Below, piece by piece: positions 53,060-62,310 of a stretch of 64,000 nucleotides of DNA (position 1 is its first letter; the number at the start of each line of letters is the position of its first letter). This stretch comes from Eutreptiella sp. 'Long Island Sound 2002'. Its lineage: Eukaryota > Protista > Euglenida. The position numbers and the translations under genes were made by a program. The DNA lies in assembly GCA_964036045.1 (NCBI GenBank), contig OZ038378.1:42780001-42844000 (forward strand), written 5' to 3'. The notes under the pieces were generated by a model, which had not been told where the DNA came from, searched no databases, and saw only the letters and a list, made by a program, of their open reading frames with translations.

Positions 53060-53700
53060 TCATTGAACTCCAATGTATCCCCCGCCCAAGGACGGGGGTA
53101 AAAGGAGGTCGCTGAGAACACGCGGGTCTTGAAAATCTGTCGCGTAGCCCATCACCGCACGCCCTTCTTCCCACCGCCCAAAAGAAAGGAACCACGCGCC
53201 TAGTGGCCCCCAAGCCCACACCGCCGCGGCGCCCCCCCTCCTATGCCCATGCCACCGTCCATCCGCCAACTTTGTCCCCTAGAGGAAGCTTGCCAAAGCT
53301 GCTTCAAACACCGGCGGCCCCCAAGGCACCACTTTGTCATCCCCCTCCCACGCTCTAGTGTAATTCCGCACGTAACCTTCCCAAGCCCTTATCCACTCAG
53401 ACCAACGGCGCCAACGGCAACCGATGAACCCCCGCTTAGTGGCCCAGAACCGGAGGGCCTTTTGCCCAGTAACATCCGCCACCCGGATGGAGGCGGCTTC
53501 GCCAACCCGAAGGAAGGCGAACCATGAAAAGCACATGAGCGCCACCATGCCCCCCCCCCCCCCGGTTCATCCGACCCCTTTCTTGCCACTTCCCTGAGTA
53601 CCCACACTTGTGGCTGAGACGCATAGCATAGAAGGTAAAAATTGAATGGAAATTGCTGCTCGTATTGCACAGGATTTTCGAAAATGCCGCCCATGTATGC
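53060..53700 (-). pseudogene. Tyrosine recombinase
   Basis: FSWFAFLRVGEAASIRVAD (R, ~53500), WHGHRRGGA (HxxR, ~53240), FGRW and VMGYA (catalytic Y, ~53145): the R-HxxR-W-Y signature. Confidence 0.85.
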
Positions 53701-54639
53701 TCACCAAATCCGAGTCATGTCGCAGCGTGGATTTCGAAAATTGCAAGCAACATAGCATGGAAAATTTCCTGCAAACATACCCGGGGATCTTGGCCAGAAA
53801 ATCCCCGGGATGCCGCTACCGATATTTTTTGAGCCGCTTTCCCGGCCAAAACTTCCGGGCGTTTTTTTTAGCCGTTTTGACAACTTCCAGTGGCGTTTCA
53901 AAAATCTTTGCGCACCATAGGAGATGATATTCTAACTAGGCAGTGCAAAGACACCTGCAAAAGAAGGGCAAGAAGAAAGTATTTACTTAACTTGAAGCGT
54001 GAACGTTGTACTCTCCTTCACTTAGCTTTCGTACTAAACATGCCTGACTGGACATGGCATCCACATCCACTACCTCCTTTCCAATATGTACAGCCACACG
54101 GCCATACTTCTTGCTTCGGGAACCTTCCGGGTTCCGGGGGAGCTTCTCTTCTGCACCCGGGAGGAGGCGGAGGCCCACCTCCGGGAGGCCTTGAGGGCGG
54201 GGGACGACGGGGATGACGGGGATGACGAGGGGGACGAGGGTGGTGACAAGGGTCAAGGAGGTGACAAGGGGGGTGAGGTGGGGGGTGACAAGGGGGGTGA
54301 GAAGGAAGGGGACACGGGGGGTGAGAAGGGGGGTGCCGGGAGCAAGGATGAGCCCCGGCAACCCCCCAGCACGGAGGAGGGGTAACATGCGTGTCGCGAC
54401 TCGCAAATGGGGGCCGGAGGAGGCAGGGGGGCTCACCGGCCTAATTGGGCTAACCCACCACCAAGTGACCTTCCAAGTGACCTATGAAGTGCGGCAGGGG
54501 GCTAACAGGGTTAACCGGGGGTTGGGAGGGGGGGAACCCGGCGCTCCGATAGTCGAGTCTAGCATCGGGACCCTGTGATTCGCCACGTCTGGCCATGGTA
54601 GCCGGGGCAGGTTCTAATTGAGGAGTGGCGAAGCATTCG

Positions 54640-54725
54640 TATATATCCTTCTAGCGGCGTTCTACCGAACCGTTCTAGCGGCGTTCTAGCTCGCTCGCTA
54701 GAACCTCGCTAGAACAGCTAGAACA
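54640..54725. repeat. Cluster of GTTCTAG/CTAGAAC motifs (same motif as the nearby introns)
   Basis: TTCTAGCGGCGTTCTA repeats followed by inverted GCTAGAAC repeats. Confidence 0.8.
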
Positions 54726-56053
54726 AAATTTTTTTGGACTCCAAAATCAGGTGAAAGCAGTCAAATTGTGAAAAAAAAGGTATGGGCCCCCGAGTATGGA
54801 TAGGGGGGTCCAGGTTAGACACCTCATCTCCCCCCTCCCCCCCCATGCGGGGGGGTACCAAGGGTGGCCCACATAGGGTCTGAAAAGTCGTGCCCAATTT
54901 AAAACATGTGCTGCACTTCGAAAGTCTCTAAAAAAAGAGGCAAAGGAAAACGTGCTGTTGAACCAGCCCCTAACCCTAACCGAAATAGTGCCTCCATTGG
55001 CATTGTACCTCCTTCGGAGGGGAATGATAGTGTAGCCTCATTTCAGGGCCTTGATGTACTTACTACAGAACAACGTGTTCAGCCTCCACAAAAAGCTAAG
55101 CTGATGTGTATCCCCATTGTTGATAGTGACATCGAGCACCAACTCGTGGCACATGGTGGCAACAATAGCAGCAGCAGCATTAGCAGCTGTAGCAGAAACG
55201 GTAGCAGCAGTAGCAGCATCAACAGTAGTAGCCGCAACGGTGACAGTAGTACTCAAGGCCCCTCTGGCCCCGACTCACATAATGGTGGGCAAGACGTATC
55301 TGGGGGCTCTACTACAAGTGCCACCGATTTTGGACTCATCCACGTCATCGGGTAGCAACATAGAAACCCCATGGCCCCTCTTTCTCCCGCTTCCTCTTCT
55401 TCCCCTTCTTCCCCTTCTTCCCCCCCTCCCCCTCCCCATTGGACCACTGCGACACTACCCACCACTCCCCCGGGTCCAACTCCTCATCCCAATCCCCCAA
55501 CACCGTCACTTGGCCGACGGTCCCCCCATTGCCCCCCTCCGCCCAAGGGACATACCGGGTGTCCCCCACACCCGGCACATGCCCATAGGGGTCCCGGCCC
55601 CTATCTTGCAATGGGGGGGCTTGGGGTTTGGGGGGGGGGGGGTGGCTTTGCCCTTACCCTTGGCCTGGGGCTTGGCCTTCGCCTTGGCCTTGCTGGGCTT
55701 GGGGGGGGGGGGGCTCTTCGTCGCTACTCTCGAAGTGGCGGGGTTTTTACTTGGGGGCCTTGGGGGGGCAGGGGCGTCCTGACCCCGTTGGTGCTGCTGC
55801 TGCTGCTACTGCTGGTCTCCTCCGCCCGGTCCTGCACCCTGGCCCAACCCTTGCGCTGCGGGTCCATGCCCCCAGCAGTCCGGCCCGATTCCCACCTACC
55901 CAAACCCTCCAACACCGAGAGGGCCCGATTGGGGTCCGCCCCCATCATCCGGCTCAACGCGGTGACCCCCACGAGGCACGTCCGCCTTTCGCCATCGCGC
56001 CACTCCACACGCACCCCGCGGGGGTCGGCTCCACACCTCTGCACGTTGACAAC

Positions 56054-56207
56054 CTGCCGACAGAAACAAAGGCAGGTGCGTTCTAGCGGCGTTCTAGGCA
56101 ACTGTTCTAGCGGCGTTCTAACGACGTTCTAGCGGCGGCGGCACGGCGGTGGCTAGATCAAGACTAGAACGGTTCGCTACATCAAAGCTAGAAGGCAATC
56201 AGCATAC
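56054..56207 (-). other. GT-AG intron (154 nt), CTAG-rich family
   Basis: ACG|GTATGC donor and TTTGTTTCTGTCGGCAG| acceptor. Splicing joins two ORF fragments in frame. Confidence 0.8.
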
Positions 56208-57462
56208 CGTGCCTTGGCGGTCCAGGGCGGGGGAGATGGCTCCCAGGGCCTTGGCGAAGGCGTCGCGGGCGTTGGGGGGGTGCGGCTGCGGGGGGCCCCC
56301 AGCAGGGGTTGCGGCGGGCTTCGGCTTGGACTTGGGCCAAGAGGCAATGCTATACACCACCCCGGCATACGCCCCCCGGTTCGCCGCCTCGGGGTTGAAA
56401 CCCCCGACGTCCATCAGCGTCAACCAGGTCGGCGTCCAGATCCAGGCCTTCCCCGCATACTCAACCCCCCCTTTTTCCTCTCAGGGGTGTTGATGTTGGT
56501 TTGCGCCAACTCGAACATCTTCACCCCTCTTTTGGGGGGGGCGCGCACCTCCCCCCATCCCTTCCCCGGCCCCGGCAGCTCAGGTTGCCACCCCCAGCAC
56601 ACGTTGACCACCCCTATGCGCAGGGGCCTGTCCAGGTGGACAACCCCCCCCTCGTCCACCCATACCCACCGCCCCGCCCCCAACAGCCGGTGGTGCACCC
56701 GCACCAACAAAAACCGGAGAGTCCAAACCAGAGTCTCCGGGGCGATGAGGAGGGGGGTGTCCAGGTTTGGGGGGTGCAGGCCAGCCCAGATAGCCGGGTG
56801 CCATGGCAGGTCCTGGATGGCCCCCGCACCCCCCCCCCCCCCGCCAGCGTCTCCACCACCACCTTCAGCTCCACCTCCTCCTTCATCATCCCCTCCTCCA
56901 TCTCCTCTGCCTCCACTTCCACCTCCACCACCTCATCCACCTCCTCCTCCTTCACCTTCTCCACCGTCTTGGCCAACTCTCCCTCCATCCACCGCACGCT
57001 GCGATCGAGCGCCTCGATCGCCTCCTCCTTCTCCGCCACCGTGGCCTTCGCCCTGCGGAGAGTGTCTTCTCCATGCACACCCTCTCCGCATCCCCCCCCT
57101 GCCCGCAGGTGGCCAAGTTTGGTCTCTCATTGGGAGACCTTTGCCTCAGCCTTGGCCTTGGCCCCCTTGGAGGCTGCGAGGGAAGCCGAGAGCCCTTTGA
57201 GCCCCCCCCGCACTTCCTCCACCTCCGGGTCCTCCGCCGGGACCGTTCCCTCCGACTTCCCGGCGACCAACAGGGAAGGGGTTGCCAATGGTGGAGGTGG
57301 GGCTTGGGGTTGGGACTGGGGCTTGGCCGTGGGCTTGGCGAGGGGGGGTGCCTTGCCCTTCGGGGCCTGCTCGGCCTTCGGCTCGGCCTCCTCGGCCCGC
57401 GCCTGCTGTGCCTGCTTCCGCGCCTCCACCACCTGCGAAAGCAGCGCTTGGGTCGCCAGATT

Positions 57463-57600
57463 CTGTAGCAAACACAGGAGCGTTCTAGTGGCGTTCTAGG
57501 CAACCGTTCTAGCGGCGTTCTAGCGACCGATCGTGCTGCCTAGATCAAGACTAGAACGATTCCCTAGATGAGCGCTAGAACGCACAACAAGACAATATAC
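57463..57600 (-). other. GT-AG intron (138 nt), CTAG-rich family
   Basis: CAC|GTATAT donor and TGTGTTTGCTACAG| acceptor, phase 0. Internal sequence homologous to 56054-56207. Confidence 0.75.
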
Positions 57601-58699
57601 GTGGCGCAGCAGCTCGTGCATCAACTCCGGCGATGCCATCTTGTTGCTCAATTTTCTGGTTCAGGGAAGCTTGCATGTAGCCCTGGCCCCTCCTTACCTC
57701 CATGGCATCCCTGCCCGAGCTTGGCACTTGTGACCGCGGCCCCCCATGCACAACCCACGACACGTCAAAGTATGCAAACAGCCATGTCATGCACTGTGCT
57801 TGCACATTGGCCTCCCTCTGGATGGCCGACCAGTGACGACCCGACACCTCGTCCACCCCCTCCACCCGACAGGCCCCCCCCGCCGGCTGTTGTGCTCGTT
57901 GTGACCATGCTTCAAAAAGCGGTTCACGCTTTCCGAAATATCAACCCAGTACAGAGCCAGCCTAAATGGCTTAATGTTCTGCAACGGGGTATCTACATCA
58001 TGCTCAAGGCTCAATAAGTACCATGATGTGGTTCCGACAGTACAGTGGCGCCGGAAATCGCGGGCCACAGGCACAGTTCGGTGGGTTAGGGCTCTGATAT
58101 GTACAATAAAGGGCTTGCAGCAGGTCCCACAGGTTCGCGATGGCCTTGTACTTGGCCGTGCTAGGCCTAATGCCGAGGCACCTAGCAACATCCGGCCATG
58201 CGTCAAAAAAGTTGGCCGTCTCTTCCCCGTCCGGGGAAGCTGACCCATAAACGCTCCAACCTGCACGCCTCTCTGATAGGAGAACTTGCACGCCTTGACG
58301 GAGCGCAGGGGTGACCGACCTAGCCTCCCGGTCGACAAACTCCCCCAACAAATGGCCCATGGCCATTGTCAAGTGCAAAATGCACAAGACGACCCACGCA
58401 CGTGGCAATTTCAAAATGCGCTGCGTACTGCAGCCGGTGGCTTGCAAGGAAGGCGTCCCAAGGAGGAAGGCCGTGCAGTTGGCCTCATCACCCTCCATGG
58501 CCCGCCGGATAGCACTACCCTCCCAAGTCGTCGTTTGCGCATTCCATATCCCCTCATTTAACATGGAGCCCACTTGGGGGCAAGTGGACACCCCGATCAC
58601 CCTTCGCGTCGACGGTTGATCCCCCCCAAGGGTCACCTTTGCCTCCTCCTTGGAGGCCCCCCATTGGACCAGCCCCGTGTCGATGATATCGTGACCCAC

Positions 58700-58827
58700 C
58701 TAAACACGAGACATGGGGGGTGGGTAATTTCGTTCTAGTCTAGTCCAATCTAGCTTCTAGCGAGTGGTGTTCGAGGCTGACTAGATCAAAACTAGAAGGA
58801 GCGAAAGGCACTAGGTGAGAGGAGTAC
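58700..58827 (-). other. GT-AG intron (128 nt), CTAG-rich family, inside the transposase
   Basis: GAG|GTACTC donor and GTGTTTAG|GTG acceptor. Splicing gives in-frame WKRNWE|VGHDIIDTG. Confidence 0.8.
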
Positions 58828-59643
58828 CTCCCAATTCCTCTTCCACAACGTCCCAAGGGTTTTCATGGCCTTGTCATCGCAATTGGCCATGCTCAACAGC
58901 CAAAGGCCCGCGGGGCAGCGGGCCAAGCAGTCGGCCAAGGTTGGTCCTTGGCCAAGCAGTTGGCCAAGGAGATGGTGTGTTGGGTCCAATTGCCCCCGGC
59001 CATGGGGTAGGCATCTCCCCGGACGATGAGCGTCAACGGGAAGTTGCGGTTGATTGACCGCACCAAGCCCGGCCTGGAGAGAATGTATGTGACGCATGAG
59101 GCGAAGGGCCATGAGATCCCTGTGGCCTTGGGCAACACCGTGGCAACGGGGTCATCCAATTGCACCGGGGCGACCAACTCCTTCCAACGGGCTTGGAAAG
59201 CCCGCTCGGTACAAATGGGACGGGAGTAGGGGCCAGCGGGGACGGTTCGGTGATACTCCAACTTACGGAGCGTGTAGAGGTCCGAGAGGGCCCCCAGGTC
59301 CTCCACGAGGACTTGGGGGCCCTCATGTTGAGCGATGGTTCACACATGGCGGTGGGGGGGCGGAAGGGAGGCGGTGTATGCCTCAACGGCGGCCTTGCAT
59401 GCCTCACCCGTGGTATGGGTAGAAGTGGCGGTGTTCACATATTGGATGGCGTTGTTGAATTGCCGCCGTGCTAGGGGGCATGATACCGCCCACGTGGCCA
59501 AGTAATGGCCCACCCGCTCATCCTTGAGGTTAGATGCCCCACTCAACTCCCGTAGCGCCTTCGACAAGAGGGAAGTATCCTGCCCGGTTGAGGAGCAAGG
59601 GGGGAAGTGGCGGGGTGTTTCATTGCAAAGAAATGTGCAATAT

Positions 59644-59830
59644 CTAAGCGCGAGAGAAGGAAGCATGGAACAATGAACTACAGACAATAGCAAGCATGCA
59701 CGGCCAAACAATGAAGAAATTGGGACATTTGGGTAGACATTATATCGTTCTAGTATTGAACCAGTCCAGGCTAGAACATCTAGGCTAGAGTGTTCTAGGC
59801 TAGAACAAGATTGGGTCTTCTAGCGTGTAC
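59644..59830 (-). other. Candidate GT-AG intron (187 nt), CTAG-rich
   Basis: GTACAC donor and CTTCCTTCTCTCGCGCTTAG acceptor, phase 2 on both sides. The junction codon now reads TGA, so it is less secure. Confidence 0.5.
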
Positions 59831-61119
59831 CAAGGGCAACCTTGGATAGTTTCCAACTTGGCTGGCACCCACCTTCACATGCCACATGTTGTGCCACAAC
59901 TCCCACACACGCAAAACACATCCACTTCCTCCTTGGCACCTACGAAAGTGCACTTTCCAGAGCGAGTGTCAGTGTGCATTAATATAGTACAGCCACCTGC
60001 TTCTTGCAATTAAAAGAGATGGTGTAACAAGCGTGCAAACATTGTGCGCTACAGCACATTGGCAGCCACCATTCAAGCCTCCAGTACAAAATTTCGATGG
60101 ACAGGGGCGCAAATTTTGGGAGAGGGAACTTTTTGCTTCTTACGTACGAAATTTTGGTAGAGTTCGTGTTTCAAAGGTTCGGAAGTACTGACATTCTATT
60201 GTGTACTATTGATAGGCGCGTACTTTTTTGCAACCCTTAAGTCCCTCTCCCCTGCCGCATCTGAGAACAACATGGGGGTGCGAGGGTTGAACCATGTGTG
60301 GCTCCACCCGTGCATATATGGAGTCGCTGCGCAACCCTCTTCGGCGAATTCAGGGATGATGTGCACAATGTAGGTGCACACCAACCCCATAGCACGCCAT
60401 GAACAAGTGGACAACTTTGCACAACCACAAAAGAGGTGCACCATGTGGCAATACACCAAAACTATTGAGTGAAAGGGCACAAGCACAACCATGCCACCTG
60501 CTAGTCAGCCCATTGCTGTCCGAGCCTCACGGCCTGTTAAGCTCATCAGAGCCAGGAACCGACCCCTCACCAAACGCCGGTGCTCCCGGCGAGCAGGTGA
60601 TAGGGATCTAGGGTTGTGCCTGTTTGCCACAAGAACTATAACTTGCAGCAACTCATGTTGCGACTGAGGCCGGAGTGTGCGCCCAATGACACTAAGCAAC
60701 CGCGATGCACTACCCTTGTTGTGGTGCAACAGAGACAGTATGATGTATACATTTTCTAAGTTCGAAACACCTTGAAACTGATGGGCCCCCCTGAACTTGC
60801 ATGAGCATGGCTTTGAGGTGCTGGAATGGCTTGGGTGCCAGGCAAAGGGGCCATTGGCCGCCGCACAATCCTGATTGTGCCAGATGAGGGGCGGGGCAGG
60901 TTGTCTAGCTCCTTGCAGTCCAAAGGGGTAGCTCCTAGGAAGTTCATGACAAAGGCCAACACCATAAACTGATCCGCAGGGACACGACATATGCTTGCAA
61001 AGGGCTCCAACTTGGAGACATTGCCCCTAACCCATACAGCATAGTTGTCCATAACGAAATAATACTGAAACATTGTGCTTCAGGAGTACCCCTAAGGAGA
61101 GTAGAGGATGGGAGAGCAA

Positions 61120-62310
61120 AAAGGGCCCACTGTTTCAGTTTCCTGCAACCAAGGCATTCTTGTAAAGACCAAACCAGCAGCTTCCACGAGGACTTTATAC
61201 TAGCCGATTTGCTCTCACCAAGCCTGAGATCTGGAGGCCCCAAGTATGCTCAACTGTCCGCCCCTTTTAAGGAGGCCACTGTTTCAGTTTCCTGCATGTG
61301 AGGCATTTTTGGAAAGCCCCAACCATTAGCTCTTACCAAAACTTTACTTTAGGCTATTCGCTCACATCACGCCTGAGATCTGGAGGCTCGAAATGTGCTC
61401 GACTATCCGCCCCTGTGAAGGGGCCCCCTGTTTCAGTTTCCTGCAAGTCAGGCATTTTTGGAAAGATCCAACCAGCTGCCCTCACCAAAACTTTATTTCA
61501 GGCTATTTGCCCACACCAGGCCTGAGATCTGGAACCTCGAAATGTGCTCAACTGTCCGCCCGTGTCTAGGTGCCCACTGCTTCAGTTTCTTGCAAGTAAG
61601 GCATTTTTCCAGAGCCCCGACCGGTAGCTCTCACCAAAACTTGATTTTAGGCTATTTGCTCACACCAAGCCTGAGATCTGGAGGCTAGAAATGTGCTCGA
61701 CTATCCGCCCCCGTCCAGGGGCCCACTGTTTTAGTTTTCTGCAAGTGAGGCATTTTTGGAAAGCCCAGACCAGTAGCACTCACCAGAACTTTATTTTAGG
61801 TTGTTTGCTCACACCAAGCCTGAGATCTGGAGGCTAGAAATGTGCTCGACTATCCGCCCCCGTCCAGGGGCCCACTGCGTTAGTTTTCTGCAAGTGAGGC
61901 ATTTTTGGAAGACCCTGACCAGTAGCTCTCACCAGCACTTTATTTTAGGCTATTTGCTCACACCAAGCCTGAGATCTGGAGCCTCGAAATGTGCTCGACT
62001 ATCTGCCCCTTTGCCTACTGTGTTGGTTTCCTACAAGTAAAGCAAATTGGGAAAGCCCCGATCAGTAGCTCTCACCAGAACTTGATTTTAGGCCATTTGC
62101 TCACACCAACACAGAGATTTGGAGGCTCGAAATGTGCTCGACTATCTGCCCCTGTCTATGGGCCCAGTGTTTTAGTTTCTTGCAAATAAGGGATTTATGC
62201 AAAGCCCCGAGCAGTAGCTCTCACCAGAACTTGATTTCAGGCTTTGTGCACACAGGAGCACAGAGATCTGAAGGCTCCAAGGGTGCTCGACTATCCGCCC
62301 CCGTCCACAC
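61120..62310. repeat. Tandem satellite, about 149-bp unit, about 8 copies
   Basis: GCCTGAGATCTGGA recurs at ~61223, 61372, 61520, 61670, 61819 and 61969, with variants at ~62115 and 62262. Confidence 0.93.

Follow-up and report, generated by a model that had tools for sequence, protein, structure and literature searches.

Feature anatomy of the locus

We analysed a window of 64 kb (64,000 nucleotides; contig OZ038378.1, assembly GCA_964036045.1, forward-strand positions 42,780,001 to 42,844,000) from the euglenid Eutreptiella sp. 'Long Island Sound 2002', in which a first-pass annotation, made from the letters alone, had picked out a CTAG-rich stretch at 54640-59830. The region corresponds to a single, dead copy of a cut-and-paste DNA transposon, ~5.4 kb long with two genes and very abundant in this genome, and its recurrent motif, GTTCTAG, is gathered in five non-coding modules: a 5′ terminal module, a 3′ subterminal module and three introns (Table 1). 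These arrays are, we think, probably docking sites for a protein of the element.

Table 1. The transposon copy and its parts, in window coordinates and in the order of the genes
Feature	Position	Strand	Remarks
TSD copy, 5′ side	59837-59838		CA; adjoins the tip at 59836
5′ terminal module	59740-59836	−	Motif module; element opens with CCCTTGGTAC on the gene strand, tip 59836; five TTCTAG cores including a GTTCTAG/CTAGAAC dyad
Gene 1 (transposase) exon 1	58828-59624	−	AAT instead of the start codon at 59624-59622; in-frame stop 59340-59342
Intron 1	58700-58827	−	Motif module; GT-AG, phase 0, 128 nt; three TTCTAG cores, convergent
Gene 1 exon 2	57601-58699	−	Catalytic core with CxxH and ESxNxxxK motifs; frameshift near 58055
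Intron 2 (predicted)	57463-57600	−	Motif module; GT-AG, phase 0, 138 nt; 13 codons into gene 2; six TTCTAG cores
Gene 2 exon 2	56208-57462	−	Low-complexity and coiled-coil protein, plus a conserved domain without family match
Intron 3 (predicted)	56054-56207	−	Motif module; GT-AG, phase 0, 154 nt; six TTCTAG cores
Gene 2 last exon, first part	55376-56053	−	Broken by the inversion at 55375/55376
1.26-kb inversion	54113-55375	.	Holds the element's 3′ end and 509 bp (54867-55375) of an unrelated host repeat
3′ part of element, inverted here	54118-54864	+	747 bp; gene 2 end, 3′ UTR, 3′ subterminal module, 3′ tip 54864
Gene 2 stop	54383-54385	+	In the inverted 3′ part
3′ subterminal module	54640-54725		Motif module; six TTCTAG cores
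TSD copy, 3′ side	54865-54866

Homology to other element copies breaks off at 59836 in nearly all copies that reach this point (60 copies compared, at least 25 of them ending at 59836), and the same ~45 bases of the 5′ end recur, inverted, at the opposite end of intact copies; the element is therefore a DNA transposon with terminal inverted repeats (TIRs). The target site duplication (TSD) is 2 bp long, consistently so in all three pairs of ends compared (this copy and two others), and empty paralogous sites in copies of the host repeat show both the duplication and the exact ends. TIRs, a TSD and empty paralogous sites – the marks of a cut-and-paste DNA transposon – were thus all found. The element is present in thousands of copies: the exon-2 peptide, searched against the 2.28-Gb genome, gave 5937 first-look candidates, the best 150 of which are 78-90% identical, and the genome also has many copies of intron 2 and of the 3′ end region.

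The first-pass annotation had proposed four introns, the fourth, at 59644-59830, as probable. That interval proved instead to be the 5′ TIR with its subterminal motifs and the leader: homology ends at 59836, just outside it, and the position of the start codon lies downstream. The three intervals that had been considered secure do hold up as introns, as set out below.

The motif is confined to non-coding modules

The CTAG-rich motif family proposed at first pass does exist: the window has 23 occurrences of GTTCTAG, as compared to 3.6 expected, a count reached in none of 100 shuffles, and 21 of the 23 fall within 54640-59830. All 26 TTCTAG cores of the element lie in the five modules, with none in ~3.8 kb of exon sequence; as judged by the tetranucleotide CTAG, the ratio is 35 in the 603 nt of the modules versus 4 in 3826 nt of exons. 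The extended site approximates to (C)GTTCTAG(C)(G), the element's own arrays being GTTCTAGCGG, and the sequence TTCTAGT(C/T)TTGATCTAG is, as annotated, common to introns 1, 2 and 3. Units are spaced 11, 13 and 11 bp apart and in every module point to the centre, i.e. the arrays are convergent. The motif also forms part of both TIRs and of both subterminal regions. An 18-mer of two units occurs 2182 times in the genome, its reversed control not once. The arrays vary by whole units: copies differ by one unit (11 nt) in intron 2, intron 3 and the 3′ module, and intron 2 of this copy is itself one unit short (138 nt versus 149 nt in most copies).

Three GT-AG introns, two of them paralogous

In agreement with the first-pass annotation, introns 1, 2 and 3 are all phase 0 and flanked by unrelated exons; read-through of each meets in-frame stops. 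The borders are conserved across family copies, with GT kept in 50/52, 51/55 and 10/11 and AG in 49/52, 44/55 and 10/11 copies of introns 1, 2 and 3, respectively. For intron 1 the junction is corroborated by P0075, the transposase of a sister family (see below), which is a single continuous open reading frame (ORF) colinear with both sides; the exons were searched separately. Introns 2 and 3 are predicted from ORF logic and phase 0. We also considered the nonconventional introns of euglenids, which carry a CAG...CTG code and depend on the pairing of their ends (PMC12501133), and rejected this type because the borders here are plain GT-AG without that code.

The likeness between introns 2 and 3, first noted for a near-identical 3′ half, is genuine homology and is not limited to that half: the two introns of this copy share 75% identity across 131 nt, and their consensus sequences for the family can be aligned from GT to AG, with the surrounding exons unrelated. 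Introns 2 and 3 and the 3′ subterminal module have ~90 nt in common at ~88% identity, all in the same orientation. Intron 1 and the 5′ terminal module resemble the other modules at the level of the motif only, plus a short common stretch. Tandem exon-intron duplication as the source of the intron 2/3 likeness was rejected because the homology stops inside the introns.

Sister families exchange the motif at matching places

Protein searches returned diverged relatives of the transposase, all from the same genome source and themselves high-copy elements. Two sister families, B and C, carry motifs of their own, GTTCCGGCG and GTTCAACCG, in the same kinds of places. Family B (P0066) has 42-51% protein identity and a TIR tip identical to that of our element; the TIR site that reads GTTCTAG in this element reads GTTCCCG in that family, as a variant of the family B motif GTTCCGG. 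At the exact codon position of intron 1 family B has a GT-AG intron with three to four GTTCCGGCGAC units, and between the transposase and gene 2 it has a palindromic module of the same units. At least four tandem ~80-bp repeats, their number varying between copies, also lie between the transposase stop and the motif module of family B (L076 2930-3250, gene orientation).

The motif of family C (P0075), GTTCAACCG, closely flanks the transposase ORF on either side and occurs as well in the 5′ subterminal region and following gene 2; there is no intron at the intron-1 position. The copies of this family are 96-99% identical (L071-L075, e.g. G000:C1:47905034-47909536) and so young, and most of the 87 places scored have intact 506-codon ORFs: from its sequence, family C looks recently active. 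In both B and C the module next to gene 2 sits between the transposase stop and the gene 2 start codon, not in coding sequence. Same-direction arrays are frequent in the sister families, and a GTTC core is common to the motifs of all three. Since the motif is exchanged at homologous positions across families, the design is common to them and the motif private to each. A tblastn comparison of the gene-2 ORFs of B and C with this element's gene 2 gave no significant match, though the architecture looks alike.

Gene structure and kinship of the transposase

The gene models rest on the family consensus and on intact copies such as L058. The two genes overlap: the ATG of gene 2 (57639-57637) lies within the tail of gene 1, and the last 39 nt of gene 1 exon 2 are, in a different frame, the first exon of gene 2 (57601-57639, MASPELMHELLRH). 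After these 13 codons gene 2 continues, across intron 2, into a long exon and, beyond intron 3, ends with an exon of ~330 codons; no further introns were seen in it. Exon 1 of gene 1 is 51% identical to exon 1 of family B over 236 aa.

A profile of 24 transposase relatives matched amphioxus RAG1L in the PDB (6b40_A, E 5.5e-5; the next match stood at 0.59). A Foldseek search with a structure model of P0075 gave ~45 top PDB matches that were all RAG1, RAG1L or Transib (RAG1 probability ~1.0); the model itself is poor (mean predicted local distance difference test score, pLDDT, 50), so the fold match serves as supporting evidence only. Atlas feature matches carry RAG1 families as well. Single-sequence PDB searches of the transposase returned nothing, and Pfam scans of all exon ORFs and the relatives gave no family and no RAG1 Pfam model. 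On these matches we accept the transposase as a distant relative of RAG1/Transib.

Three further observations concern the coding sequence and its 3′ flank. If intron 2 is spliced from the transposase message, the transposase frame extends by ~150-180 codons (56952-57503, minus strand); this arginine-rich alternative frame of the gene 2 exon stays open both in this copy and in the consensus of the family, which may just reflect high G+C. Homopolymer runs of 12-14 G or C in coding sequence (55620-55720, 56820-56850 and others) fall where the reading frame changes from copy to copy and within the consensus. The 3′ untranslated region (UTR) of gene 2 (54400-54530; consensus from L062-L070) has private repeats of its own that differ from the GTTCTAG motif, namely some six copies of GGGCTAAYC and three of CCAAGTGACC.

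The arrays as candidate docking sites

We favour, with somewhat better than even confidence, the view that the arrays are lineage-specific docking sites, housed in introns, for a sequence-specific protein that the element itself encodes. The motif belongs to the TIRs, its units are spaced by one helical turn, it avoids exons, and it changes jointly at ends and introns between families; docking sites are therefore the reading that best fits the sequence comparisons. One of the two explanations offered at first pass, transposase-binding motifs housed in introns and at a subterminal site, thereby appears well supported by the TIR content, the 11-13 bp spacing, the 11-nt steps between copies and the replacement of the motif in the sister families.

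We infer that a protein binds these sites and that it would be either the transposase or the gene-2 product. The sites at the ends would be needed for recognition of the element, and the internal ones may serve regulation – self-activation, anti-silencing or help with synapsis – being tolerated, presumably, only where splicing takes them out of the message. The internal arrays would be copies of the 3′ subterminal module, and the modules may be kept alike via slippage of units and copying between modules. Plant transposons are known to have such a design, but for this type of transposon and for this protist it is novel.

Several points weigh against docking sites. Pfam scans of the exon ORFs found no recognisable DNA-binding domain in either gene. 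A host factor is another conceivable reader of the sites, given the GTTC core that the three families have in common. The motif cores of intron 2 are less variable than the rest of the intron (1.9% versus 4.8%, p=0.017), but this extra conservation is absent at the 5′ end and no more than marginal in intron 1; as it fails at the 5′ end, conservation adds little. Finally, the whole-length homology of introns 2 and 3, including the neighbourhoods of the splice sites, fits the duplication of an intron cassette equally well.

Introner-like origin and other explanations

The other explanation offered at first pass was that the introns are introner-like insertions: an end module with built-in GT and AG would have been copied or inserted into the genes of the element, and possibly into host genes, leaving the motifs as a by-product of descent. 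Part of this picture stands. Introns 2 and 3 are whole-length paralogues in unrelated exons and co-oriented copies of the 3′ subterminal module. Intron positions differ between families, intron 1 being present in this family and family B and absent in family C; in B and C the gene-2 module is upstream of the start codon and not within the coding sequence. There is a proposal that euglenid introns originated from miniature inverted-repeat transposable elements (MITEs; PMC12501133), and introners have been described from elsewhere (PMC9860276).

Other observations speak against it. No intron border has the CCCTTGGTAC tip or a 2-bp duplication, and we rejected self-insertion of a MITE as the origin of the introns because they lack both TIR tip and TSD. 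Among the sampled copies no presence/absence polymorphism was seen: intron 1 was found in 51/51, intron 2 in 48/48 and intron 3 in 9/9, with no intron-less copy. The 29 best genomic matches to intron 2 all lie within element copies, as do the three checkable single-module 18-mer sites, and no module was seen outside the element; among the 18-mer sites listed on contig 1, the module spacing typical of the element (~1.4 kb) is seen in 18/47 clusters. The 29 best matches gave no sign of similar introns spread over many unrelated genes; only introns 2 and 3 are clearly paralogous, and both lie in one gene. The position of intron 1 is moreover constant between families while the motif changes, which is a better fit to co-evolution in place than to fresh insertion. 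Taken as an account of the arrays as a whole, we consider an introner-like origin unlikely, at perhaps one chance in a handful; for intron 3 by itself such an origin is possible.

Given the module upstream of the gene 2 start codon in families B and C, intron 2 may be a spacer turned intron and, judging by the alignment, intron 3 may be a copy of intron 2. The pair provides a clear example of an intron that is a copy of another within a transposon gene, and bears on the origin of new introns. Somewhat more doubtful again is the idea that the 3′ end-recognition module is a mobile intron cassette that we see just as it arises: bordered by GT and AG, it would have been copied from where gene 2 begins, out of a spacer or intron, into the gene 2 coding sequence. 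If true, the same process could seed introns in host genes and would show concretely how a transposon end can become a spliceosomal intron in euglenids, whose introns have long been suspected of a MITE origin.

It is improbable that the arrays act at the level of RNA, the convergent units folding the pre-mRNA intron into a hairpin that joins the splice sites or feeds small-RNA production. The stems that the first-pass annotation had foreseen between GTTCTAG and CTAGAAC are modest: intron 2 (z-score −3.4) and the 3′ module (−6.5) do fold better than shuffled sequence, but introns 1 (−1.6) and 3 (−1.2) are not significantly structured. While euglenid nonconventional introns require the pairing of their ends (PMC12501133), none of the three introns has the CAG...CTG code of that type, the same-direction arrays of the sister families are unable to pair, and the TIRs, which act as DNA, hold the same motif. 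RNA hairpins would be a by-product at best.

Least credible of all is that the intervals are not introns and that the locus consists of independent ORFs set apart by spacers or promoters that carry the motif: families B and C do have a module between the transposase stop and the gene 2 start, but P0075 is one ORF homologous to both sides of intron 1, all three intervals are GT-AG in the family consensus, in phase 0 and with stops on read-through, and the catalytic core would be split in two if intron 1 stayed unspliced.

Relation to known systems

Subterminal arrays of this general kind are known from the elements En/Spm, with its TnpA sites, and Ac: short motifs in both orientations that are read by an element protein, in transposons with multi-exon genes. 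Our element, too, is of the cut-and-paste type, has multi-exon genes and carries short subterminal motifs in either direction. To our knowledge, the binding sites of En/Spm and Ac are confined to the ends of the element, whereas in our element equal arrays occupy all of the introns.

The closest documented counterpart in design is the anti-silencing system of VANDAL21 of Arabidopsis, a member of the Mutator superfamily, whose protein VANC21 binds family-specific motif arrays in introns and in intergenic and terminal non-coding regions (Hosaka et al. 2017; PMC5735166). VANDAL arrays evolve via change of the repeat unit, and related families differ in motif (PMC5735166). The parallel covers element-specific short-motif arrays in introns and in intergenic and terminal non-coding regions, family-specific motifs, and gain and loss of units; it extends to the cis-side pattern alone. 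The present element differs in belonging to a RAG1/Transib-like superfamily with clear TIRs in another eukaryotic supergroup. It also differs in that its TIRs, too, are built from the motif, its arrays converge, two of its introns copy the subterminal module over their full length, and there is no VANC homologue.

On the docking-site reading, this genome would hold a natural series of related transposons, at least three families, with few-base swaps of a GTTC-type site at ends and introns. It would lend itself directly to the study of how the code of protein-DNA recognition diverges so that sister elements cease to cross-talk – the problem solved by VANDAL elements in plants, here met in a RAG1-like lineage.

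Kinship with Transib, ProtoRAG and RAG1 is suggested by the profile and Foldseek matches given above, but the element departs from them in having a TSD of 2 bp and not 5 bp, a tip of CCCTTGGTAC and not a CAC-type heptamer, and a second large gene. With introners (Gozashti et al. 2022, PMC9860276; 2025, PMC12130899) it has in common sequence-similar GT-AG introns at unrelated positions that descend from transposon end sequence; unlike introners, these occupy two or three positions only, all in the parent element, with no TIR or TSD at their borders and with no host-gene copies among the matches checked. The Plavaka elements of red algae are multi-gene DNA transposons with a ParB-like PAG3 gene and adjacent tandem arrays of inverted repeats, for which binding by an element protein has been proposed (bioRxiv 10.1101/2025.02.11.637652). 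Our element resembles them as a multi-gene DNA transposon with inverted-repeat arrays proposed to be protein-bound, but no ParB-like domain was detected, and its arrays lie in introns and TIRs, not beside one accessory gene.

State of this copy and its surroundings

This copy is dead, the start codon of gene 1 being gone and its frame interrupted by a stop and a frameshift (Table 1), and ~85 bp of its 3′ TIR are deleted. Its 3′ end has been inverted together with part of the host repeat, one breakpoint lying in the transposon and the other in the flanking repeat. The original order can be read from intact copies of the host repeat, in which 53602-54112 is contiguous with the reverse complement of 55375-54858, followed by 59834-60799. 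The motif cluster at 54640-54725, placed at first pass 'beyond the genes', is a real cluster; it is not simply beyond the genes, being the 3′ subterminal module carried within the inverted segment.

The host repeat itself (53602-54112, 54867-55375 and 59839-60799) belongs to an unrelated family, with 80-88% identity to its copies on other contigs, and was the target of the transposon's insertion. An Rfam search of the 64-kb window gave no match anywhere. Just beyond the element, at 61120-61500, lie three tandem 149-bp units that are 75-80% alike.

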